This document shows positions 30,551-51,341 of a DNA stretch of 64,000 nucleotides, one piece after another. The first letter of the stretch is position 1, and each line of letters starts with the position of its first letter. The notes under the pieces are model-generated. The model was not told where the DNA came from. It was given only the letters and a program-made list of their open reading frames with translations, and ran no database searches. The position numbers and the translations under genes are program-made. The stretch spans positions 171,813 to 235,812 of IMG/VR virus record IMGVR_UViG_3300032562_000004; one strand, 5' to 3'.

Positions 30551-30558
30551 TATAATAT

Positions 30559-30819
30559 TTATAGTGTTTTGCCCACTTGAGTTAAAATTTGTTCTAGCAA
30601 GCTATGGTCATCTTGTGTACGGCCAAATTCAGCTTTGTGAGCAATCTTAATAGCTTTTTTAAGGATAGCTGGTTTAATTTCTAATTCTTCAGCAATAGCT
30701 TTAACTGTGTCATTCAATCCACCTTGTAGTGTTTCGATTTCCATAGTAACAGCCATACCTTCATTGATAATTTGCTCTAATTTTTTAGTTTGTTCTGCTG
30801 TGAATACGCGGTCTGACAT
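30559..30819 (-). CDS. Small DNA-binding protein (DsbA/GapR-like)
   Basis: 86-aa helical protein, ...VKAIAEELEIKPAILKKAIKIAHK. Confidence 0.55.
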   Translation of the reverse strand: MSDRVFTAEQTKKLEQIINEGMAVTMEIETLQGGLNDTVKAIAEELEIKPAILKKAIKIAHKAEFGRTQDDHSLLEQILTQVGKTL

Positions 30820-35409: not shown

Positions 35410-36486
35410 CTATTTTTCTTCTATGTAATCAGCCGATTGCTCAGCGTCATGTTTGGCTTTACGACGAGCCATATACATTTCTAATGCTATTTCACATTCT
35501 TCTAAACTGCTAAAACGACTTGGTAATTCTTTGCCAGCACGTTTGATACAAAAGCCATTGCGCTCATCGCCGTGGATCTCAACTAATACAGAGCCGCCGC
35601 CACCTGAGCCAATGCCAACATCCTCGACTGGAACATTAACTGTTTTAACTGGAGCTGTTGCGCTTTCTGCGTATGTAGGATCAGTTAACCCAGCAGGCGC
35701 TTCGCCTTGTGCCGGAGTTTGATTTGGATCTTCGTCCAACTCATTTTCGTGTTCGCCGTATTCGTCGGCATCTTCATCATCGGCGTATTGATTGTATTCA
35801 ACATTAGCAGCATTAAAACTGTGTGTTCCGTGATTGTATAAATTTACAATTATAAAATTACTGCGTTGTCCAAAATCAACAATTTCGCCAGTAGCGCCGC
35901 TAAACTGTACATCGCCAATAATTTCAACTGGGTCACCAATTCGTAATTCTTGACCTTCTTCTAAACTATCAGGGATAGCTTCTTCTACATCTTGTTCTTT
36001 TTTCTTTGCTAACTCAGCACGAGTTTGTTGTGCTAACTTGTTGCCTACGCCTGTGCCTTGTTTGTTGAAGCCCGGAGGATTGCGAAACGGTTTAGCCGGA
36101 GCCGGTGTGTATGGTGCGTCGGGATCTTGATCAGCTTCGTCGACTGATTCTTTAGACTGTAGTTCTAAATCTTTTAATTCTTTTTTCTTTAAGTCTAAGT
36201 CTTGTTTTTTCTTAGTAATTAAATCTTTGTCTTGTTTGAGTGAATCTTCTGCTGATTTTAAATAATCAACTAAACTTGCTTTAACTTTTGATAGTACATC
36301 GTCTGACTTCTCTTCGGCAAACTCAACACCACCGACACCAGGAGTAAAATCCTCTTCGGCTTTTTTTAAATTATTAAAGAGTGCTGGTTTCTTCTGTTTA
36401 GATTCAGCAATATGCTCATGCTTAGGAGCTATGCGCCCCTCAAGTATGGCTAATTTTTCTACAATACTATAAAAGTTATGGTCCAT
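35410..36486 (-). CDS. Acidic mosaic protein, probably virion-internal
   Basis: LEG/FAEE/VDEA/VEEA/LEEG/LDED/YAES linkers; KOW-like LRIGDPVEIIG...GATGEIVD. Confidence 0.65.
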   Translation of the reverse strand: MDHNFYSIVEKLAILEGRIAPKHEHIAESKQKKPALFNNLKKAEEDFTPGVGGVEFAEEKSDDVLSKVKASLVDYLKSAEDSLKQDKDLITKKKQDLDLKKKELKDLELQSKESVDEADQDPDAPYTPAPAKPFRNPPGFNKQGTGVGNKLAQQTRAELAKKKEQDVEEAIPDSLEEGQELRIGDPVEIIGDVQFSGATGEIVDFGQRSNFIIVNLYNHGTHSFNAANVEYNQYADDEDADEYGEHENELDEDPNQTPAQGEAPAGLTDPTYAESATAPVKTVNVPVEDVGIGSGGGGSVLVEIHGDERNGFCIKRAGKELPSRFSSLEECEIALEMYMARRKAKHDAEQSADYIEEK

Positions 36487-36926
36487 TATGCTCTAGCTTC
36501 TTTCAAAAAACTTTGTAGCATCCAGATAAACTTGTTTGTGGCAGTTAATCTTTCAGCGATAAAATTTGCGATATCTTGCTTGTTCTCTGCTGTAGCAGCC
36601 GCAAAACATTCATTAAGAAGGTTGATCATAACATGGGAATCAGCTAGTAATTCCTCAAGCATGAGTTGTGCTCTAGGCACTTTAGTTTGGTCTTGAATAC
36701 GGGATAACTCGTTATAACGAGTAAGGCTAGCAGGAGTGTATTCTCCCAGGGTGCGGATAAACTCCCCGAGCGGGTCAACGGCAGAATATGCGTCCTCATA
36801 CACTTTTTGTAGGAATTTATGATATTGATAGAAGTCTTTGCCTTCTACATTAAAATGAAAGAAATGGGCTTTTAAGTAATAAGCGAAGTCACTCGCGAGT
36901 AAAATTTTCATCAATTCAGCCAGCAT
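36486..36926 (-). CDS. dps: Dps/ferritin-like DNA-protection protein
   Basis: HFFHFNVEGKDFYQYHKFLQKVYED...D..GE.IR...WML. Confidence 0.88.
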   Translation of the reverse strand: MLAELMKILLASDFAYYLKAHFFHFNVEGKDFYQYHKFLQKVYEDAYSAVDPLGEFIRTLGEYTPASLTRYNELSRIQDQTKVPRAQLMLEELLADSHVMINLLNECFAAATAENKQDIANFIAERLTATNKFIWMLQSFLKEARA

Positions 36927-37031: not shown

Positions 37032-37613
37032 ATGAGTATTTACAGAAAAGATAGCTACCATCGTAAAATATACGAGGATCACTATGGGCCAATTCCAAAA
37101 GATTCAGAAGGTCGTAGCTACGAAATACATCATATAGACGGAAATCACGAAAATAACAACATTGATAATCTTCTCTGTGTAAGCATACAGGAACATTATA
37201 ATATACACTATTCTCAAGGAGATTTCAAGGCTTGCCTTATAATGTCTAAAAGAATGGACATTTCTCCGGAAGAAAAATCGAGGCTAGCAAAAATAACTAA
37301 CGCAGGCAAAAACAATCCAAGTTATGGGATTTATTGGTGGACTAATGGAGTTGAAGAAAAGAAATCAAAAACTCAACCGGGACCAGAATGGACTCGCGGA
37401 AGATCTGCTATATTAAAAACTCGTGTATCGTCTACTATAGTTAAAAAGGATATTCGAGCAGGGGCAAAAAATACAAGTTATGGAAAATATTGGTGGACTA
37501 ACGGAATAGATAGCATTAAATCAGATAAGTGCCCAGAGGGATATTACAGAGGGGTAGGAGAAATACAGAGAATGAAGTCAAGAAATAAGTTGGCTAAATC
37601 TTGGATTTTTTAG
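37032..37613 (+). mobile_element. Free-standing HNH homing endonuclease, antisense to flanking genes
   Basis: YEIHHIDGNHENNNIDNL...EHYNIH; two YG.YWWTNG repeats. Confidence 0.88.
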
Positions 37614-37806
37614 TTGATTTGTATGCTTTATATTCTTTAGGAGTATTAGGAGTAAGATCGTTAGTTTCGACACCTGTAAAGAATGAGCCCTGGGGTATTC
37701 TTCGCTGTACGGCTCCTAGAGGAGTAGCCACGGGCGCAATACTTCCTGCGCTAGTACTAGCTACACTGGCGTCTTCTTTTAACCCTATAATTTCAAATAG
37801 TTTCAT
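37594..37806 (-). CDS. Small late protein (MKLFEIIGLKEDASVASTSAGSIA...)
   Basis: 70-aa ORF with CTS-like N-terminus. Confidence 0.6.
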   Translation of the reverse strand: MKLFEIIGLKEDASVASTSAGSIAPVATPLGAVQRRIPQGSFFTGVETNDLTPNTPKEYKAYKSTKKSKI

Positions 37807-38090
37807 TCTAAAATCCTAAATTTTAAGTTATCTATAACTGCTCCGGGCCCGTATTCTACTTTTAAACTTTTAACATTTAGTTGGGCTAAATGCGGGGCAA
37901 CTAACTCATAGCGTAACGTGTATTCACCCGGTTCGGCACTAATTTGTAAATCTTCTTCCAAAGCACTATCAGTCCAAATCCATGTACGTTCTGCAAATAA
38001 TTCGTCATTAACATACAAACGATAGATAGGACTTAATCCTTCCCAATCGCAGTCAATATTACTCAGTATACGCACAAATTTTTTGCTCAT
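37803..38090 (-). CDS. Hypothetical (probably structural) protein
   Basis: 95-aa beta-rich ORF after TAAATA. Confidence 0.65.
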   Translation of the reverse strand: MSKKFVRILSNIDCDWEGLSPIYRLYVNDELFAERTWIWTDSALEEDLQISAEPGEYTLRYELVAPHLAQLNVKSLKVEYGPGAVIDNLKFRILE

Positions 38091-38108: not shown

Positions 38109-39914
38109 TTATTTAGGTGCGGCAACTAATCGAACATTCTGTGCGATATCGCCTCTGTAGCCGTGTGTTGATTCAGGGTCATCTGCCCCGGTATTGATAG
38201 GTTTGTTAGTTTTCATATTAAATGCGTAAACATTTAATGAACGCCCATAACGTTGTTCTAAATCTTGCCATACTCTTTGGCCGCCTGGGGATTGATATTT
38301 GTCACTAACTAGCGTAAGCCCTTGGTTTTTAACCAACCAAGCATACAAATCTGCGGCACGAATAGGAGCTTTAGGACCTCCATATATACCAAATATTTCA
38401 AATGAATGTGGTTTGTTTGTTCCGCTAATGGTCATTTGACTAACGCGAGTTTTAGGATCAAAAACGGAGTAAGCAGAATCGTTACCCTTGTCCCACTTAT
38501 ATACTTCTAACTGTCCTAAGTTCCCTACTAAGTTACCAAGTAAACGTTTTTCTTTACCTGGAGGCACTGGTTCGCCTTTGTTTACTAAACCTGACTTGTC
38601 TTGATTTTTAGTTTTGATATTGTTATGATAAATCACTTCACTTAACTCTCGTTCTTTATTTACGCGAGCCATATGCTGATCATATGTTTCTTCATCATCG
38701 TCTGACTCTAAGGGAACATAAGCTGGCATAGAAGTCATACCCATATCTCTAGCAGCCACAGCTCTGTGGTTGCCGTCAATAATCCAGCCTTCATTATCTA
38801 CTACAATAGGTTTATTTTTAATGTCTTGTGCTGTAATATCTTTAACATAATTGTAGTCAACTAAGTTGATTTGATCGTACGGACTAACTTCATCTGAATC
38901 TATATGTAAACTAGTTAGAGGTACCGTAGTGAGTTCCCATTTAGCATGATTCATTACAGCATGGTCTATAGTAAATTCATCTTTAGGATGTATTTTTTTA
39001 ACATAAGACAATATTTCTTTGTTACTTTCTTCGCTGACTGGTTCCCATGACATTGGTTTAGCACCTTTAGCGACGGGTTTAAAACCATGACGCTTATATA
39101 ACTTAGTTAATGAGGCTTGACTTACATTACCCTTAGCCCAAGGATACAATGTTAACTTAATACCCGCTTCTTGTGCTTGACGCTGTAGCTCTTTAATAGC
39201 ACGACTACCAACACCTTTGCGTTGTTCGGGCCCGGCCATGATCCAATCTATTTCTACTGTATCAGGTTTCATACTAGGTTTGAGTTTGAACGCGGCAAAT
39301 TGCTGATCTTCGCCTTCTCCCCATACCATAACTTTATCTGCTTGACCATACGGCCAATCAGGATACTGACTATATACCCTGTCAATAAATTCTTGTGCTT
39401 TATTTGATTCTACAGCTTCATTTAAATTTTTTTTTAAAAAAGTATCGGCTAACTTTTTACACAGTAATTTAATCTTGCTATTTTCTGTAATAATGATTGT
39501 AAACTTTTCTTGGGTATTATCTTGTGATGGATCACTATACCCGCAATAAGCTAATTTGATATGTTTTTCATTTAATAAATCTGTACAGCTAACGCCATAG
39601 CGATTATCGCCAGTATCTTCACAGCATGGGCTCAGTGTAGTAATTACAATACTGCCCTTTGGCAATTCTCCGTACTCTTCTTCATACTTGTCTATGGCTG
39701 CTCGTTCCGCATGGATTCTTGAATTTCCATATAGATAATTTACACCAGTGACTAATCTACCCCGAGTATCTAATACCGCGGCGGCTACCATACCATAAAA
39801 GTCTGGATTATCTTGTTGTCCTTCGATGACCATATCGCAAAGCTCAACAAGAACTGCGTCTAGTTTTTCACGACTAAACTTTAGTTTAGGTTGGATAAAA
39901 TCGTTTAAAATCAT
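38109..39914 (-). CDS. Multi-domain protein: Zn-deaminase + GNAT + ParB-like + GNAT-like
   Basis: HAERAAI...TLSPCC..C; QRKGVGSRAI; PIVVDNEGWIIDGNHR; SDKYQSPGGQRVW. Domains joined at LNE, VSEE and LSE. Confidence 0.8.
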   Translation of the reverse strand: MILNDFIQPKLKFSREKLDAVLVELCDMVIEGQQDNPDFYGMVAAAVLDTRGRLVTGVNYLYGNSRIHAERAAIDKYEEEYGELPKGSIVITTLSPCCEDTGDNRYGVSCTDLLNEKHIKLAYCGYSDPSQDNTQEKFTIIITENSKIKLLCKKLADTFLKKNLNEAVESNKAQEFIDRVYSQYPDWPYGQADKVMVWGEGEDQQFAAFKLKPSMKPDTVEIDWIMAGPEQRKGVGSRAIKELQRQAQEAGIKLTLYPWAKGNVSQASLTKLYKRHGFKPVAKGAKPMSWEPVSEESNKEILSYVKKIHPKDEFTIDHAVMNHAKWELTTVPLTSLHIDSDEVSPYDQINLVDYNYVKDITAQDIKNKPIVVDNEGWIIDGNHRAVAARDMGMTSMPAYVPLESDDDEETYDQHMARVNKERELSEVIYHNNIKTKNQDKSGLVNKGEPVPPGKEKRLLGNLVGNLGQLEVYKWDKGNDSAYSVFDPKTRVSQMTISGTNKPHSFEIFGIYGGPKAPIRAADLYAWLVKNQGLTLVSDKYQSPGGQRVWQDLEQRYGRSLNVYAFNMKTNKPINTGADDPESTHGYRGDIAQNVRLVAAPK

Positions 39915-39915
39915 T

Positions 39916-41256
39916 TTAGTGGAACATTAGGAAACTGTTGATTACATCCAATCTGTTGGCAGCACGGTCTCCGTGTCCTGCTGGAAATATAACCACATTC
40001 CACTTAGGTTTAGGGCCTTCAGGGATGGTTAACATCTGATCGTATGTGATAATTGATGCTGGATCAATTTTATATCTAGTGGCCAACATTTTTTTAAATT
40101 CTTCCCATGCTTCGGGACTTTTAACCTGTGTACGACCTTTGGCATCTTTAACATATTTCCCTTTAGCATCCGTAACAAACAATGTGCGGAACAAGTCTTT
40201 GGGTAATGTTACAGCATCTTTAACTGCATTTCCTTGAGCTTTGTGTAGTTCAATTTGCTTTTCTTCACCGCGCTTACTTCCCGAACTAAAGTTAACAATA
40301 AAATTATCTGGTTTGTTGGCAGTTGCAGCCGCGGCTATTTTTGTATAAGCATAAAATTTTACATCTGGATTAGTACGAGCAACGTTAAATGCTAGATCTA
40401 AATATTCTTTACTAAAGAAATCTCCAGCATCATGCCAGCGTACAACTAATCTAATACCATGCTTGTCTGCTTTGCCTTTAAGACCTTGTATTTCTTTGTT
40501 AACCATGGCCATATATCCAGCAGGGTCATTGACTAAAAAGTTTAATGCTTGTGCGGCTGACATGCTACTAGCAGGGAACATTACATATCCACCTTTACGA
40601 GCGTAGCAAAATAATTGACATCCGCCAGCACCAGGGCAAGTAGTAATTTCTACAAAATCGCCTGTTTCCTCGTCCACAACAACACCGCTTAATGCTGGCA
40701 ATGTTAAGTCATAAACAATTTCGCCTTCTGTAGCACTCTTACTCATTTTAGCATTAGTGCCTAATAATGAACGAGGACGGGTAGTGATTTGACGGGCCAA
40801 ATCATCTAAATCCCATTCGGTACCTTCGTCATCTTTAGTAATTGCTTTGATATTGCTACCGTGTATGATTGGAGCAAATCTATCTTTCTTTGTCTTAGTA
40901 CCAGTTTTAATACGATCGGCATAGCCTTGTAACTCATCGCGACTCATTCGGCGATGTGGAGCATTTAACCCAATAGCTTCATTTGTAATTTCTTCTACAT
41001 TTAAAATTTTAGCCCCGGGGTGGTGAATCTCAACTTTATGTTGTGCGATTCGTGCGCTCTGAGCTTTGACCTTAAAATGTTTTGTGACACCGTATATATT
41101 TGCTGTAATTCTAAATTGTTTATTAAATTGGCCGGCTGCTAATAACCCACTAATGTCAGATTCTTCAACACCTTGATCTTCAATATGTAACGGAGTGACT
41201 TTAAATCCACCTAGTGTTGTTTGTGCAGATTCAAAGATAAATTCATGGGCTTTCAT
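39916..41256 (-). CDS. Gene-product-88-like protein with a CTS-like N-terminus
   Basis: MKAHEFIFES; TCPGAGGCQLFCYA; VRWHDAGDF; YAYTK. Confidence 0.7.
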   Translation of the reverse strand: MKAHEFIFESAQTTLGGFKVTPLHIEDQGVEESDISGLLAAGQFNKQFRITANIYGVTKHFKVKAQSARIAQHKVEIHHPGAKILNVEEITNEAIGLNAPHRRMSRDELQGYADRIKTGTKTKKDRFAPIIHGSNIKAITKDDEGTEWDLDDLARQITTRPRSLLGTNAKMSKSATEGEIVYDLTLPALSGVVVDEETGDFVEITTCPGAGGCQLFCYARKGGYVMFPASSMSAAQALNFLVNDPAGYMAMVNKEIQGLKGKADKHGIRLVVRWHDAGDFFSKEYLDLAFNVARTNPDVKFYAYTKIAAAATANKPDNFIVNFSSGSKRGEEKQIELHKAQGNAVKDAVTLPKDLFRTLFVTDAKGKYVKDAKGRTQVKSPEAWEEFKKMLATRYKIDPASIITYDQMLTIPEGPKPKWNVVIFPAGHGDRAANRLDVINSFLMFH

Positions 41257-42731
41257 TAATACGTCCTTTTAAATAATTCTAATTCTTCCATCATCCGATG
41301 GACGATGCCATCTGGACGAAGTTCTTGTGGTTTACCTTGTGCGTCGGTGTCTAATAAAAATGCATTAGCACAACGACCAATTTCTCCTGGACGCACATCA
41401 ACAGTTAGCGCCATTAAGAAGCGTGGATCTTTTGCTTCTGCGGCTGTTGGAATATAGCCCGTAGCTTCATTTAATTCGATAGCCATAAACAATTCAGGAT
41501 GTAGTTGAGCATACTTACGCATCAATACACCAGCTTTGGCATTAGCTTCATTTTCATATGGACTGCCATCTTCTCCAGCGTCTGCTGGAACTGGTCCTAT
41601 TTCATTTTGTTTTTGATGTACAAGTTCGTGTGCTACAGTTCTTAATACATCCATAATATGACGGCCGCCTACACCAACTTCAAGTTCATTGGTTCCATCA
41701 TTGTAGCGTCCAAAAGTTTTGTTTCTTACGGACCATTGTGGGTCACGACGAATTCTTAAGTTAATTTCTTTTTTTAATTTTAAATGGGAAACACAAAAAT
41801 TAATAAAATCTTCAATAATGTCTTTGTCATTATGTTTGTCTTCGTTAGCAAACATACAAGTACTAGGATTGGTTCCGTCTGGAGTAACACCAACTTCATC
41901 TAATTGTGCTTCGTTGGTAAACTCGGAAGTAGTAGGATTAGTACCGTCTGGTGTAATGCCAACTTCTTCGATATAGTCAGGACCAAAACCATATTTTACA
42001 GGAGCTTGTGGCTTACGCTCTTTTAAACTTAACTCTTGGCTTCTTGCTTCTTTACGAGCATTATGTAACTTTTTCAATTCACCACTATTGCGTAGTAATT
42101 TGAAGGCTAAATTTTCTGGGCCAAACTCGCCGTGATTAGCTAGTCCTGTACCACGCATATTTTTAATTTTATCTAATAGAGCATTCATTTGGTCTATAGA
42201 TTTAGATTTAATTGCTTGTTTAATACGCTTACTTAAATCCTTGTATTTGCTCTTAACGCTCATATCATCGATATCAGCGTGTTTGCGTCTAGGAATTTGT
42301 ATCCATTCGTTATCTACAATACTGTAAATTCCTTGACTATGATGTTCTTCGCTTATGTCCTGTACATACAATTCAACAGGAATACCTTTAATAGTAATTT
42401 TATGTTCGTTGTTATAGATAAACTTTTTAGCATCAAAAAGTTCACGATATATTTCTTTGTTTTCGTCATTGCCTAAATCTACAATTAAATGTAAATCTAT
42501 ATCAGAATGTGGAGTATAAGAAAATGCGGCATTACTACCCGAACTTGTTATATCTTTTAAATTTAAGTTGTCGACGCCAAGTGATTCAGCAAAGTCTGAA
42601 GCAATAGCTAATAACTGCTCACGGATTTCAGGATGTAAATGTTCGCTTTTATCCCATAATAAAGGATTAAGTTTATCGTGAAATTTAACTGCGTCTGCTA
42701 AATTGAAGGATTCTAATTGTTCAATGTTCAT
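41256..42731 (-). CDS. Pol-beta-like nucleotidyltransferase fused to a zincin (HExxH) domain
   Basis: SGSNAAFSYTPHSDIDLHL...PVELYVQ; RTVAHELVHQKQ...ENEANA. Confidence 0.8.
   Translation of the reverse strand: MNIEQLESFNLADAVKFHDKLNPLLWDKSEHLHPEIREQLLAIASDFAESLGVDNLNLKDITSSGSNAAFSYTPHSDIDLHLIVDLGNDENKEIYRELFDAKKFIYNNEHKITIKGIPVELYVQDISEEHHSQGIYSIVDNEWIQIPRRKHADIDDMSVKSKYKDLSKRIKQAIKSKSIDQMNALLDKIKNMRGTGLANHGEFGPENLAFKLLRNSGELKKLHNARKEARSQELSLKERKPQAPVKYGFGPDYIEEVGITPDGTNPTTSEFTNEAQLDEVGVTPDGTNPSTCMFANEDKHNDKDIIEDFINFCVSHLKLKKEINLRIRRDPQWSVRNKTFGRYNDGTNELEVGVGGRHIMDVLRTVAHELVHQKQNEIGPVPADAGEDGSPYENEANAKAGVLMRKYAQLHPELFMAIELNEATGYIPTAAEAKDPRFLMALTVDVRPGEIGRCANAFLLDTDAQGKPQELRPDGIVHRMMEELELFKRTY
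41841..41970 (-). repeat. Tandem duplication of a ~23-aa module EVG(I/V)TPDGTNP(T/S)T..F.NE
   Basis: Two copies visible in both protein and DNA. Confidence 0.85.
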
Positions 42732-45575: not shown

Positions 45576-45944
45576 TTAGAATATTACGTTTGCTGAATTA
45601 ATAGTTCCGCCAGTAAAGGATGATACATTGGCTCGCAACCATACGAAATTGCCAATCATATTAATAGCTTGGGTATCTGTAGTAGCTACATTGGCATTAC
45701 CGTAAGTTTCAATTCTGAACCATTCAGCTTGCTGAGTCCAATCGTTCAAACTACCTTCTATAGTAAGAACACCAACAAAATCTGTTGTTTGAATCATAGC
45801 TGTTTGAGCAGATCCTTGTCCGCCATAGTAATTTGCGGCTGGAATAGCATTACCATAAAATTGTGTATTAGCCCCATTATAATTACCAGATGGGATTCTG
45901 TATGTAGTTGGAGGCAATAAACCTTCATTAGTAAAAGTCGTCAT
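45576..45944 (-). CDS. Probable virion structural protein
   Basis: Beta-rich T/G/N composition; flanked by TAAATA motifs. Confidence 0.55.
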   Translation of the reverse strand: MTTFTNEGLLPPTTYRIPSGNYNGANTQFYGNAIPAANYYGGQGSAQTAMIQTTDFVGVLTIEGSLNDWTQQAEWFRIETYGNANVATTDTQAINMIGNFVWLRANVSSFTGGTINSANVIF

Positions 45945-45954
45945 AGTATATTAT

Positions 45955-46683
45955 TTATGCTGGGATGATTTCCAGCGTTTTTCTAATTATACCAGGGGAT
46001 ATAAGCTCTAGCATAACTAGCCAGCCTTCCCCATCGTGATCTATAAAGAAATAATCTTGGGTCCGCAAATAAGGGGACTTTGATAGCCATTTAGCAAAAG
46101 CCGGAGCAACTCTTATAGTATCTTGTTGATTATTAAAAAAGTTAATTAAACTGTCTTTATTAGCTTGTGTTAGTTTTACGCTTTTAAAATAACTTCTGTG
46201 GGTAAACTTAGGAACTTTTAATTTAACAGTATTTTTAGGTCTCGATATTATAGCTTCTGTATATTCCTTATTGTCAAGGAAACTCATAGCATTAAGTCTT
46301 TTAAGTAAAGACATATTGTTACTGTATATCCAACCCAAGTTAACCGATGTAACTAATTTAAAATCAGCGGTTGTTGTAAGTAGTAACTCAGCTAATTCGT
46401 GAAGATCCTCAGAAGTTTTATCAGTAATATCTTTCCAACGCCTTGTTAATATAGTTTGAGCTAGTTGAGGTTGGCCGCCGGGACGAACTAAAGTCCAACG
46501 CTGTTGTGCGACTTCTCGCCACAACTTTCTACGATCAATAATAGCATCGATATAGTTGTGGTCGAGAGTCTTCATAGCACTTACTTCATCTAAAGCAAAT
46601 GCTACGCAGTATCGATATTTGTCGTAAAAGTATCTATCTTTATCGACAGGCTTAAACGTTAGGAGATTCGCCATCAAGAACAA
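45955..46683 (-). CDS. Hypothetical protein
   Basis: 242-aa ORF. Confidence 0.65.
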   Translation of the reverse strand: MFLMANLLTFKPVDKDRYFYDKYRYCVAFALDEVSAMKTLDHNYIDAIIDRRKLWREVAQQRWTLVRPGGQPQLAQTILTRRWKDITDKTSEDLHELAELLLTTTADFKLVTSVNLGWIYSNNMSLLKRLNAMSFLDNKEYTEAIISRPKNTVKLKVPKFTHRSYFKSVKLTQANKDSLINFFNNQQDTIRVAPAFAKWLSKSPYLRTQDYFFIDHDGEGWLVMLELISPGIIRKTLEIIPA

Positions 46684-48931
46684 TAATACCAGAATTGTCT
46701 ACAATCGCCAATGGAGCAGTTTGGATAATTGTAAAATCAATCTTATCATCGATTATGATAGCATTGACGGTGCAGTCAGATAAGCGTTCAAACAAAATCT
46801 TCTTAGACAAAGGTACACGAATCAATTCGTCAATCTTACGATTAAGTGGACGAGCACCCATCTTAGGATCATAACCTTTATCAGCTAGCATATCAATAAC
46901 TGCTTCGGATAAATTAAGTCTAATATTTTTATTGTTCAAACTAACTTGTAACTGTTCAACAAATTTAAGTACAACTTTCTTAATAGCAAGGGTATCAAGT
47001 TTCTTAAACTTACAAATTTGATCGATACGATTACGCAACTCAGGTTTGAAGAAGTCCTTCATTGCTTTATCTTCTGATCCTGTTTTTTGTAGTGCTTGAC
47101 CAAATCCAATGTTATTGTTTTCGTTATCGCGAGCACCTAAGTTACTTGTCATAATGATAATAGTATTCTTAAGGTTAACAGTTTTGCCGTTAGCACTAGT
47201 AATACGAGCTTCGTCTAACATCTGTAACATAATGTTAATAACATCAGGGTGAGCTTTTTCAATTTCATCAAACAGGATGATTGAATACGGATTCTTACTA
47301 ATATCACTGATTAACTTGCCGCCACCTACATTGCCATCTTCAAATCCTACATATCCTGGAGGCGCACCAATCAACGAACTTACAGTATGCTTTTCTTGAT
47401 ATTCTGACATATCATACTTTAATAATTGCATATCTAAGTTTGTAGCTAGTAACTTAGCAAGTTCTGTTTTACCAGTACCAGTTGGTCCTAAGAATAAGAA
47501 ACTAGCAATAGGACGATTGTCGTTGCCAATACCAGAAAAGTTAATATAAACTCGCTCAAGTACGCTGTCTACTGCTTCGTCCTGACCATATAATTTTTCT
47601 TTAATATTCGATTCAAGTTCTACAATATTAGCTGAACGCTCGTTTTGTAATCGATCCATAGGAACTTCAGTAACACGACTTAATTGTTCCATAATCATTT
47701 CTTTAGTAATAGTTACATTACCTTGATCCTTAACTCGTTCCTTAGCGCAAGCGCCGTCTAACAAGTCAATACTCTTATCTGGATTCTTACGGTCGTGTAT
47801 ATAACGACCTGATAAATCTACAGCGGCCGTGATAGCATCTGTATCAATTAATACATTGTGGAATGATTCTAAGCGTGGGCTAAGTCCAATAAGGATTTGT
47901 TCTGTAACTTCGTTAGTTGGTTCATCGATACTTACACGATGGAAACGACGCATTAACGCACGATCCTTTTCAAAGGACTCGTAGTATTCTTCCCATGTTG
48001 TACTTGCGATTACCTTAAGTTTACCTTTAGTAATAGCAGGTTTTAACATATTAGCAAAGTCAAGTGTAGATTGTGAGCTAGCGCCAGCACCTTTCATAGT
48101 GTGTGCTTCGTCTACAAACAAAATACAATTACCTTTAGTTTCTAATGCGCCAATAACTTGTTTGAACTTTTCTTCAAATTCGCCGCGATATTTAGAACCA
48201 GCTAACAATGATCCAATCTCTAATGCCCATACTTCATGAGCAATTAAGAACTTAGGAACACGATTATTAATAATCTCTTGAGCTAGGCCTTCTGCGATAG
48301 CAGTTTTACCTACCCCGGGATCTCCAACCATCAATACATTAGCTTTAAATTTACGAGCTAATACTGTAATCATTTCATCAAGTTCAGCACCGCGGCCAAT
48401 CATTGGCTCAAGGCGATCTTCTACCGCCATCTTAGTTAAGTTAACACAGTATTCAGTTAAAATTTCATCTGCTTGCGTAGTTGTAAGAACTACATCATCA
48501 TGTTTGTAGTGTGCTTGCCAGTATTCCATGAACTCTTGTTTCTTAACACCATACTTTAATAAAAAGTAATGTGCGTGTGAATTATTTTCAGCCATCATAG
48601 CAAGATACAAGTCGCCAGTATTCATTGAACGGCGCCCTGTGAACAATACTTGTGTCATTGCTCTGTTGAAGCAACGCTCGAGAGCATTTGTTTTCTTAGG
48701 CTGATTGTCTTTTTTAGTAGTAACCAAACTAGTTAAACTTTGTAAGTAAGCATCTAACTCCATATCTAATAAATCTACACTAGTCCCAAAAGATTCTAGT
48801 ACTTTATAAAATGGAGCATGGCGTATTAATACCAATAAGACGTGCTCAGTTAAAACATATTCGTGTTGACGCTCTTTAGCCAATTTAACAGCTTGGGCGA
48901 CGATTTGTTCGATTTCTTTATTGTTTTGCAT
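46652..48931 (-). CDS. clpA: ATP-dependent Clp protease ATP-binding subunit ClpA
   Basis: Clp N-domain, two AAA+ modules (GDPGVGKT, GPTGTGKT), DMSEY, LFDEIEKAHPD, MGARPL; no ClpB middle domain. Confidence 0.93.
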   Translation of the reverse strand: MQNNKEIEQIVAQAVKLAKERQHEYVLTEHVLLVLIRHAPFYKVLESFGTSVDLLDMELDAYLQSLTSLVTTKKDNQPKKTNALERCFNRAMTQVLFTGRRSMNTGDLYLAMMAENNSHAHYFLLKYGVKKQEFMEYWQAHYKHDDVVLTTTQADEILTEYCVNLTKMAVEDRLEPMIGRGAELDEMITVLARKFKANVLMVGDPGVGKTAIAEGLAQEIINNRVPKFLIAHEVWALEIGSLLAGSKYRGEFEEKFKQVIGALETKGNCILFVDEAHTMKGAGASSQSTLDFANMLKPAITKGKLKVIASTTWEEYYESFEKDRALMRRFHRVSIDEPTNEVTEQILIGLSPRLESFHNVLIDTDAITAAVDLSGRYIHDRKNPDKSIDLLDGACAKERVKDQGNVTITKEMIMEQLSRVTEVPMDRLQNERSANIVELESNIKEKLYGQDEAVDSVLERVYINFSGIGNDNRPIASFLFLGPTGTGKTELAKLLATNLDMQLLKYDMSEYQEKHTVSSLIGAPPGYVGFEDGNVGGGKLISDISKNPYSIILFDEIEKAHPDVINIMLQMLDEARITSANGKTVNLKNTIIIMTSNLGARDNENNNIGFGQALQKTGSEDKAMKDFFKPELRNRIDQICKFKKLDTLAIKKVVLKFVEQLQVSLNNKNIRLNLSEAVIDMLADKGYDPKMGARPLNRKIDELIRVPLSKKILFERLSDCTVNAIIIDDKIDFTIIQTAPLAIVDNSGIIVLDGESPNV

Positions 48932-51304: not shown

Positions 51305-51341
51305 ATTAGCTCCTTGTTATTGTTATTATTTTGTATTTATA

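Follow-up and report, generated by a model that had tools for sequence, protein, structure and literature searches.

How would a phage use one protein chain that carries four enzyme-like domains, and in what form would these domains reach their targets? The question is raised by P0001, a single ATG-started open reading frame (ORF) of 601 aa on the minus strand of a 64,000-nucleotide stretch of IMG/VR virus record IMGVR_UViG_3300032562_000004 (hereafter, the window). A sequence-only reading of this DNA had described the gene as a fusion of four enzymes (zinc deaminase, GNAT, ParB-like and GNAT-like) and had proposed that it is an injected counter-defence or host-takeover toolkit, with deamination of nucleotide signals or tRNA and acetylation of proteins as putative activities. 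Our analysis showed that P0001 consists of four autonomous modules joined by disordered linkers, as beads on a string, and its sequence presents a feature that is new here: an [L/I/V]-x-E triplet in predicted disordered linker at every module border, in P0001 and in its relatives. On this basis it seems somewhat probable that P0001 is a head-packaged polyprotein, processed by the phage prohead protease into a set of injected enzymes. The source of P0001 is a giant T4-related jumbo phage of lake water (see below).

The full-length AlphaFold2 (AF2) model of P0001, built with 78 aligned relatives and fragments, had a mean predicted local distance difference test score (pLDDT) of 80 and a predicted template modelling score (pTM) of 0.36, and contained four well-folded blocks separated by low-pLDDT linkers at residues 162-170, 276-296 and 422-434. 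The borders of BLAST alignments with about 140 relatives fell at about residues 170, 295 and 425, matching these linkers. The blocks are referred to, from the N-terminus, as modules D, G, P and C. An exhaustive structural comparison (VIA) found the fold of each module in PDB, and the catalytic residues were invariant among relatives down to 40% identity. Family scans, AF2 and VIA thus bore out the proposed fusion of four separately folding modules with the identities given to them, and the five motifs that had been named were all located at the expected residues: HAE at 68-70, PCC at 96-98, QRKGVG at 231-236, DGNHR at 380-384, and SPGG at 542-545 with VW at 548-549. These motifs are not chance matches, because PF00383 and Acetyltransf_1 scored above their gathering cut-offs, PHROGs gave a ParB-like match and a PDB fold was found for every module.

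Module D is a zinc deaminase of the CDA superfamily, TadA/RibD-like. It matched Pfam PF00383 (dCMP_cyt_deam_1) with an E-value of 5e-9 and 36 bits (cut-off 25) and, by sequence, the PDB entry of RibD 2hxv (E 2e-4); VIA of residues 15-166 returned TadA 2b3j (Z-score 15.6), RibD 2b3z (Z 15.5) and further deaminases of the CDA fold. The zinc site expected as HAE...PCC..C was present as H68-A-E70 and P96-C97-x12-C110, and H68, E70, C97 and C110 were invariant in 34-35 relatives, but C98 is not a zinc ligand because it is usually S or N in relatives. Module D has the fold (Z 15-16) and the H-A-E...P-C...C site of the RibD/TadA/guanine-deaminase branch. A long insert between the Cys residues is typical of RibD, whose spacing is PC-x8-9-C, whereas the insert of module D is 12 residues long and contains an Asp103 and an Arg105 that are conserved and particular to it. 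By sequence likeness, this RibD-like insert suggests a phosphorylated small-molecule substrate; the fold is equally close to tRNA deaminases. The RibD equivalog TIGR00326 gave 12 bits against a cut-off of 156, which places module D outside that family, and, in contrast to RibD, P0001 has no reductase domain and no riboflavin context, as no rib genes were found nearby. The JGI label 'RibD-like' on relatives is a domain-level name only.

Module G is predicted to be a GNAT acetyltransferase similar to AcrVA5. Its match to Pfam PF00583 (Acetyltransf_1) had an E-value of 1.3e-5 and 25.8 bits (cut-off 20.7), with conserved motif A (Q231-R-K-G234-V-G236) and motif B (Tyr273); the best NCBIfam match was RimI, a weak one. 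The only significant match of the PDB profile search was AcrVA5 6iuf (E 1.4e-5), and VIA of the G block (residues 175-291) aligned 92 of 95 residues of AcrVA5 6iuf_B with Z 7.1 and 23% identity. AcrVA5 is an anti-CRISPR protein that inactivates Cas12a through acetylation (PMC10799925). Both proteins are of similar size (129 aa in module G and 96 aa in AcrVA5) and have in common an R/Q-x-G-x-G-S loop for acetyl coenzyme A (acetyl-CoA). They differ in that AcrVA5 occurs by itself, not within a fusion, in mobile elements of Moraxella, the identity is only about 23%, and no link between module G and Cas12a was found here. By analogy, module G would give the best lead on a substrate among the four modules; AcrVA5 is its only significant solved relative.

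Module P belongs to the ParB/sulfiredoxin (Srx) superfamily, a fold with CTP or ATP binding and, in some cases, DNA cleavage. The motif D380-G-N-H-R384 was invariant in relatives and the ParB-like PHROGs profile matched with E 3e-6. VIA of residues 326-406 gave, among the matches listed (Z 7.3-8.7), sulfiredoxin 6ky4 (Z 8.7), SerK 5x0b (Z 8.1), PadC and KorB (both Z 7.6) and also SbnI. ParB/Srx proteins alone occupied the top of the PDB profile search, with weak E-values of 0.05-0.25, and NCBIfam DpdB (DGQHR) matched at 1e-3 with 18 bits, far under its cut-off of 300. Module P could not be shown to belong to a DdrB-like clade, because none of the Pfam ParB-family models reached E 1.

Module C is, according to its model, a GNAT at the level of the fold without belonging to a sequence family; the proposal that the last module is GNAT-like thus stood for the fold (Z 8.9, all 50 matches listed being GNATs), but no sequence family was found and the acetyl-CoA loop seems degenerate. 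The AF2 model of residues 421-601 had pLDDT 81 and pTM 0.78. The best VIA matches of module C alone were the C-terminal domain of Mycobacterium tuberculosis ICL2 (6edw, Z 8.9) and Rv1916 (Z 8.8), with a root-mean-square deviation of 2.8 over 112 residues, and residues 462-601 within the full-length model again matched the GNAT-like C-terminal domain of ICL2 (Z 8.7). Foldseek matches were nearly all GNATs, weak, with a best E-value of 1.9e-3, so that nothing in PDB was found at E 1e-3 or better; structural neighbours in the ESM Atlas were phage 'N-acetyltransferase' clusters with TM 0.66-0.72. None of the Pfam and NCBIfam GNAT models matched at E 1. Sequence and profile matches of module C in PDB (beta-lactamase N-terminus, antibody light chains) were rejected as chance local matches. 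The best-conserved block was L-T-L-V-S537-D538-x-x-Q541-S-P-G-G545-x-R-V-W549, reduced across relatives to S537-D538-x-x-Q541-S-x-G-G545-x-x-V-W549. Judging from the order of secondary-structure elements in the model, the loop equivalent to motif A would be G-G-P-K-A-P, and Q-S-P-G-G would be positioned one element later, ahead of the next helix. By analogy with the ICL2 domain, module C may merely bind a CoA-like ligand. A profile-profile alignment of G and C with hhalign gave a probability of 0.2%, i.e., no detectable homology, so that C is not a recent duplicate of G.

Eight [LIV]-x-E sites were found in P0001: five are located inside helices or strands, and the other three at the low-confidence junctions, one at each. 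The T4 prohead protease gp21 has L/I-X-E specificity and cuts after the Glu (PMC9026906); by sequence, the module borders of P0001 look like cleavage sites of this type. The same triplet was found at the borders of the relatives. The D module ended with T-F-L-x-x-x-[LIV]-x-E in 65 of 76 distinct contexts, irrespective of the module that followed, and G modules ended with W-E-P-[VIL]-x-E or an equivalent shifted by one residue. The start of module C was preceded by [LIVM]-x-E and then V in 34 of 45 distinct contexts, the other 11 having T or A at P3; stand-alone genes beginning with MRIDE/VI are included in these contexts. At a background rate of 1.5% per position, [LIVM]-x-E preceded the module-start words LKIDN (16/16), NFADG (55/60), AFDQP (8/8), GGW (7/7) and DQEEY (3/3). 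Counted over non-redundant contexts, [LIV]-x-E covered 5.6% of junction-zone positions vs 0.96% of core positions. The argument is based on the recurrence of the motif at the borders of unrelated modules and not on the raw counts.

We inspected the phage for the corresponding protease. The window's IMG/VR virus record, here called G000, has 158,513 bp (the window is G000:10057-74056), and its first 74,056 bases coincide, at 100% identity, with the final 74 kb of another record, G001 (235,812 bp), which encodes an identical P0001 protein. G001 contains a Peptidase_S77 gene of the gp21 family (E 5.6e-33; 214 aa) and a gp23-family capsid protein (E 7e-142) that presents L-N-E52 just ahead of the conserved core, comparable with L-T-E65 of T4 gp23. 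A 441-aa scaffold protein has 17 [LI]-x-E sites (3.9% vs 1.0% genome-wide), and the protease itself has nine. A T4-type head-maturation system is therefore predicted in the same phage from this overlapping record. Neither Peptidase_S77 nor Gp23 was found in the window's own record, whose part past the shared 74 kb is absent from G001. Adjoining the prohead protease (locus L019, 2429-3410; G001 about 89.1-90.3 kb) there are also two tandem paralogues of 194 and about 172 aa that share a C-terminal NAMYQRGQFN-x-PAAFN-x-x-PYNL and may be head-decoration or core proteins.

The N-terminal leaders provided a second line of comparison with T4. The T4 internal proteins (IPs) enter the prohead through a capsid-targeting sequence (CTS) of 10-19 residues, which is then removed by gp21; in the T4 record, the leader of IPIII and IPII is MKTYQEFIAE/A and that of IPI is MKTFKEFTSTTTPVSTITE/A, the slash marking the cut. 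In P0001, alignments with PDB deaminases begin at about residue 15, with no helix or strand earlier, and the start MILNDF was near-invariant in relatives that begin with module D and absent from internal copies of D. This leader shares its M-I-L-x-D-[FL] start with cleavable MILQDLFE/ leaders. Relatives with unrelated first modules begin with MRAREFITE/S, MRAQEFIFE/S, MRVQEFITE/Q, MRAKDFITE/V, MKIREVIVE/S, MILQDLFE/T or MRIDE/V. The first two, as well as MKAHEFIFE/S at the start of the 446-aa GP88 neighbour of P0001, resemble the IPIII/IPII leader, that of the GP88 protein being a near-copy of a T4 internal-protein leader; the GP88 neighbour is thus, by its sequence, likely a second head-targeted protein. 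The 828-aa DUF6321 protein of the same locus also has a leader-like start, MNLFDIFE/G. A pattern of M-x(2-4)-[DE]-[FLIV] with [LIVF]-x-E within 12 residues was present in 26 of 46 distinct N-termini other than those of D, vs 7 of 339 phage ORFs. Stand-alone C genes start with MRIDE/VIYHNN where the polyprotein has ...LSE/VIYHNN, i.e., the same mature end is predicted for both.

A word-indexed search collected 336 relatives from metagenomes, the longest contig having 375 kb, and 34 different module orders were counted among 141 proteins: D-C, D-P-C, D-P-X, G-X-C and X-D-G, among others, plus stand-alone C, G and D genes. The X segments corresponded in Pfam to extra GNATs, DUF6934, GH19, NTP_transf_2/Polbeta nucleotidyltransferase (NTase), the papain-like toxin domain Tox-PLDMTX and, in one relative, ART-PolyVal, which takes its Pfam name from the polyvalent proteins. 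In at least 12 related loci the flanking genes were conserved and only the module content of the polyprotein changed. Modules are also exchanged between neighbouring genes: the 491-aa NTase-like neighbour is fused upstream of D in relatives P0105-P0119, with its N-terminus MNIEQLESFNLADAVKFHD matching those of P0105, P0107, P0114 and P0119, and residues about 542-711 of the DUF6321 protein recur as a module in the variable polyprotein of related phages (tblastn, loci L012-L014 and L018). P0007, P0008 and P0015 were rejected as full D-G-P-C relatives, since the alignment showed a basic NFADGK... linker module in the place of G; the tally of 34 orders still labels them as D-G-P-C. This recurrent, highly basic module, of about 70-90 aa and with no Pfam hit, starts with NFADGKVKGKSRPGRVKKAGASC and ends with ...MYHWCANMKSGKKKTNE/ (P0007, P0008, P0015, P0130 and P0131; e.g., P0007:168-310). 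It replaces module G in the closest full-length relatives and recalls the small basic internal proteins of T4.

This combinatorial pattern is the signature of polyvalent proteins, the multidomain chains of phages and conjugative elements described by Iyer, Burroughs, Anand, de Souza and Aravind in 2017 (PMC5512222). P0001 and its relatives share with them at least two unrelated effector-type domains in one phage chain and mosaicism with the characteristic repertoire. The published chains combine between 2 and 15 conflict-type domains, and their architectures are extremely mosaic; their repertoire includes GNAT, ParB-like, Pol-beta NTase, ADP-ribosyltransferase (ART) and peptidoglycan hydrolase domains, and ART-PolyVal itself was found in a relative. 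There are also differences: P0001 lacks a MuF, a zincin peptidase and a DarB-type helicase/methylase module, and the paper, which names the deaminase fold in passing, has neither a zinc-deaminase module in its list nor any reference to linkers, capsid-targeting sequences or processing by a prohead protease (PMC5512222).

If P0001 is processed as suggested above, it would be synthesized late and drawn to the prohead scaffolding core via its N-terminal leader, as are the T4 internal proteins and Alt. The gp21-type protease would then cut after E166, E295 and E426, giving free enzymes of 18.7, 14.6, 15.1 and 19.4 kDa, which would be retained in the head and ejected with the DNA, by analogy with the T4 IPs and Alt; they would therefore act before any phage gene expression. 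The likely roles of the modules are given here in the order of falling confidence, G, D, P and C. Like AcrVA5 with Cas12a, module G would acetylate a protein of the host, which may be an immune effector; D would deaminate either an RNA base or a small molecule that resembles a nucleotide; P would bind or hydrolyse a nucleoside triphosphate, or nick DNA; and C would bind an acyl-CoA-like ligand or acylate a substrate.

The closest known counterparts are IPI, IPII, IPIII and Alt of T4. The internal proteins of T-even phages are diverse injected anti-defence proteins with only the CTS in common (PMC3012670, PMC12373910). The likeness comprises a T4-related phage with a gp21-type protease, a gp23 capsid protein and a scaffold, L/I-x-E sites, leaders like MKTYQEFIAE/ in relatives and neighbours, diverse non-homologous payloads at a polymorphic locus, and an expected role in anti-defence or host takeover. 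However, each T4 IP is one small inhibitor without enzymatic activity, and Alt is one enzyme, whereas the chains described here have up to six or more cassettes with internal sites, so that one targeting signal could load several enzymes; moreover, P0001, a putative internal protein, has a leader without the cleavage Glu. The protease motif of phiKZ and SPN3US is S/A/G-x-E. Reports on these giant myoviruses describe a gp21-related protease that cuts many head-loaded proteins after Glu, and the ejection of such proteins into the cell (PMC5694885, PMC7411985, PMC10052503). These phages are of another lineage and their substrates are mostly of unknown fold, in contrast to the recognisable, cassette-shuffled enzymes found here.

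Several observations weigh against a packaged and processed polyprotein. The P0001 gene is surrounded by replication and auxiliary genes, not head genes, and in G001 the head module is more than 110 kb away; in the window, no T4-type late promoter (TATAAATA) was found directly 5' of P0001 nor upstream of its gene cluster, and a sequencing-run search found no RNA runs with the locus. The protease specificity of this phage is assumed from T4, and two P3 residues, the Val of junction 2 and the Thr of ...KKKTNE/, a linker common in relatives, are outside the T4 L/I consensus. [LIV]-x-E could serve a purpose other than cleavage, and its conservation in related sequences is not independent, so that the counts given above overstate independence. 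The CoA loop of module C is degenerate and this module may not be catalytic. The weakest link is the leader of P0001 itself, MILNDFIQPK, which has a D-F-I core and is loosely similar to the T4 CTS but contains no Glu for processing. In T4, a change of the processing residue is reported to stop cleavage but not targeting, and an uncleaved leader in P0001 is therefore plausible. The injected toolkit of the sequence-only reading thus received indirect but specific support (the [LIV]-x-E triplets at the borders, T4-CTS-like leaders, a gp21-type protease, polyvalent partners and the AcrVA5 homology of the first GNAT), although its packaging and cleavage are predictions from sequence.

Some of these points would fit as well with an uncleaved polyvalent effector whose four modules act tethered, either packaged by another route or expressed early, with the motifs as features of the linkers. 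Polyvalent proteins elsewhere are described as multidomain chains (PMC5512222), and the location outside the head module, the leader without a cleavage site and the off-consensus P3 residues are in agreement with this. We consider such an effector unlikely, given that it leaves unexplained the hydrophobic-x-Glu at every border of unrelated modules within variable disordered linkers, the leaders of stand-alone modules that end in the same triplet at the same residue, and the enrichment of the motif in the phage scaffold and protease. An improbable alternative is a cytoplasmic multi-enzyme for nucleotide or DNA-modification metabolism, neither packaged nor host-directed, in which the deaminase would yield a modified pyrimidine, DNA would be the target of the ParB/DpdB-like module and acylation of a base or precursor would fall to the GNATs. 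Module D is indeed closest in sequence to RibD-type pyrimidine deaminases, the best NCBIfam match of P, DpdB, comes from a DNA-modification system, cytidylyltransferase-like and kinase-like genes are nearby and radical-SAM enzymes occur in relatives. But in a pathway fusion the set and the order of the domains stay fixed, whereas 34 orders and single modules were seen here; the partners include toxin-type and cell-wall-degrading domains (Tox-PLDMTX, ART-PolyVal, GH19); and both the RibD and DpdB scores were far below their cut-offs, with no reductase domain (see above). That P0001 is a decaying or accidental fusion without function, or that its motifs match by chance, is highly improbable: the individual E-values of modules P (against PDB) and C are weak, but the frame of 601 codons is uninterrupted, the identical protein was recovered from many independent samples, no catalytic residue varies among the relatives and all four domains were modelled with confidence; the conservation data effectively refute it.

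If P0001 is indeed packaged and processed, the locus may, tentatively, exemplify a plug-and-play delivery in which cassettes bounded by protease sites behind one leader load a changeable set of free enzymes into the capsid, for injection before gene expression begins. Zinc deaminase, AcrVA5-like acetyltransferase, ParB-type, NTase, ART and papain-like toxin cassettes have been seen up to now. Such a system would include the first deaminase and the first Acr-type acetyltransferase delivered pre-made in a virion, and would explain how polyvalent proteins get taken apart after delivery; polyvalent proteins and T4 internal proteins, so far treated separately, would be combined at this locus. The rule of a hydrophobic-x-Glu in disordered linker behind a CTS-like leader could be used to find injected payloads in metagenomic T4-like phages. 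P0001 provides four individually expressible anti-defence candidates, namely the RibD/TadA-like deaminase D, the AcrVA5-like acetyltransferase G and the domains P and C, and the locus points to a natural multi-cargo counterpart of the T4 CTS packaging system used in phage engineering.

The assignment of the source phage was based on the window's record, an IMG/VR virus contig on which a T4-like DNA polymerase, a clamp loader and an endolysin are encoded. The nearest matches of this T4-type polymerase were in Phosso and Atu_ph07, both jumbo phages (47-50% identity), and in Rak2-like phages. Identical copies of the P0001 protein are encoded by 14 contigs, among them two other IMG/VR records, and the sequencing-run search found the locus DNA only in DNA metagenome runs from lakes and freshwater; an assembly artefact is ruled out by the 14 identical copies together with the presence of the DNA in many lake-water metagenome runs. 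Megablast and tblastn of the gene or the protein against the isolated phages of INPHARED gave no match at 1e-5, so that no cultured relative carries the gene. G000 runs on for 84 kb past the 74 kb shared with G001, and the phage genome would therefore have at least about 320 kb. CheckV rated G001 as 100% complete at 235,812 bp; either G001 is incomplete, the genome being at least 320 kb, or G000 and G001 are different genome arrangements.

P0001 lies within a tightly packed series of co-directional genes. Besides the missing late promoter, sigma-70-like and terminator-like sites in the window showed no excess over the shuffle expectation. TATAAATA occurred only twice in the 64 kb, vs about 10 copies expected, and this depletion suggests that the T4 late-promoter word is functional in the phage. 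A 122-aa ORF (45576-45943, minus strand), below the 150-aa ORF threshold, occupies a seeming intergenic gap of 396 nt and is preceded by CATAAATA, which has one mismatch relative to the T4 late-promoter word. The coordinates of the features are listed in Table 1.

Table 1. Features of P0001 and its locus, in window coordinates.
Feature	Position	Strand	Basis or remark
Whole gene P0001 (601-aa polyvalent polyprotein)	38109..39914	-	Stop codon 38109-38111; ORF list and translation
Module D, zinc-dependent deaminase, residues 1-166, about 18.7 kDa	39417..39914	-	Pfam PF00383, PDB RibD, VIA
Module G, compact GNAT, residues 167-295, about 14.6 kDa	39030..39416	-	Pfam PF00583, AcrVA5 profile match
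Module P, ParB/sulfiredoxin fold and acidic tail, residues 296-426, about 15.1 kDa	38637..39029	-	PHROGs, VIA
Module C, divergent GNAT fold (predicted), residues 427-601, about 19.4 kDa, pI 9.6	38112..38636	-	AF2 and VIA
P0001 leader, residues 1-14 (MILNDF...), candidate CTS	39873..39914	-	pLDDT <50 at 1-8; first helix at 15
Junction site 1, L164-N165-E166 / A167	39417..39425	-	Disordered linker, low pLDDT 162-170
Junction site 2, V293-S294-E295 / E296	39030..39038	-	Disordered linker, low pLDDT 276-296
Junction site 3, L424-S425-E426 / V427	38637..38645	-	Disordered linker, low pLDDT 422-434
Leader sequences: MILNDFIQPKLKFS; MKAHEFIFE (GP88 neighbour); MRAREFITE (relative)			
GP88 neighbour, 446 aa, upstream of P0001	39916..41256	-	Pfam PF17338, E 3e-35
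Pol-beta-type NTase-like neighbour, 491 aa from ATG at 42731	41256..42731	-	ESM Atlas feature score 0.97 to NTP_transf_2-bearing phage clusters
DUF6321 protein, 828 aa	32922..35408	-	Pfam DUF6321; part of conserved locus
Late-promoter word TATAAATA	30556-30563	-	30 nt upstream of holin-like gene
Late-promoter word TATAAATA	51334-51341	-	74 nt upstream of DNA polymerase gene

The order of genes in the locus is a phrog_1574 protein, the NTase-like gene, in some cases GP88, the variable polyprotein led by D, a 95-aa ORF, a Dps/ferritin-like gene, a 358-aa protein and the DUF6321 protein. The GP88 neighbour kept residues 1-33, which comprise the leader region, and 88-446 in related loci, with residues 34-87 varied or lost, which suggests that it also has a modular N-terminal part. 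Tblastn of this protein against isolated phages gave only unannotated matches in Streptomyces phages, and a literature search for PF17338 found no paper that mentions the family. A few genes upstream of P0001, at 46652-48931 (minus strand), a 759-aa ClpB-type protein with a double AAA+ architecture was identified (phrog_4871, E 1e-236), with Clp_N and ClpB_D2-small domains in the relative.

The 95-aa ORF (37803-38090, minus strand) is located downstream of P0001 and directly follows the polyprotein gene where this ends in a C module. It was kept, with 66-72% identity, downstream of the polyprotein in most related loci whatever the modules, and could encode a chaperone or inhibitor of one of the enzymes, or be a mere synteny neighbour. 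Between this ORF and the Dps-like gene lies an HNH homing-endonuclease gene on the opposite strand (37032-37613, plus strand), which looks like a recent mobile insertion because the syntenic locus of a related phage (L002) does not have it. The Dps/ferritin-like gene (36486-36926, minus strand; Pfam Ferritin, E 6.5e-17) was conserved beside the payload genes in all the related loci.

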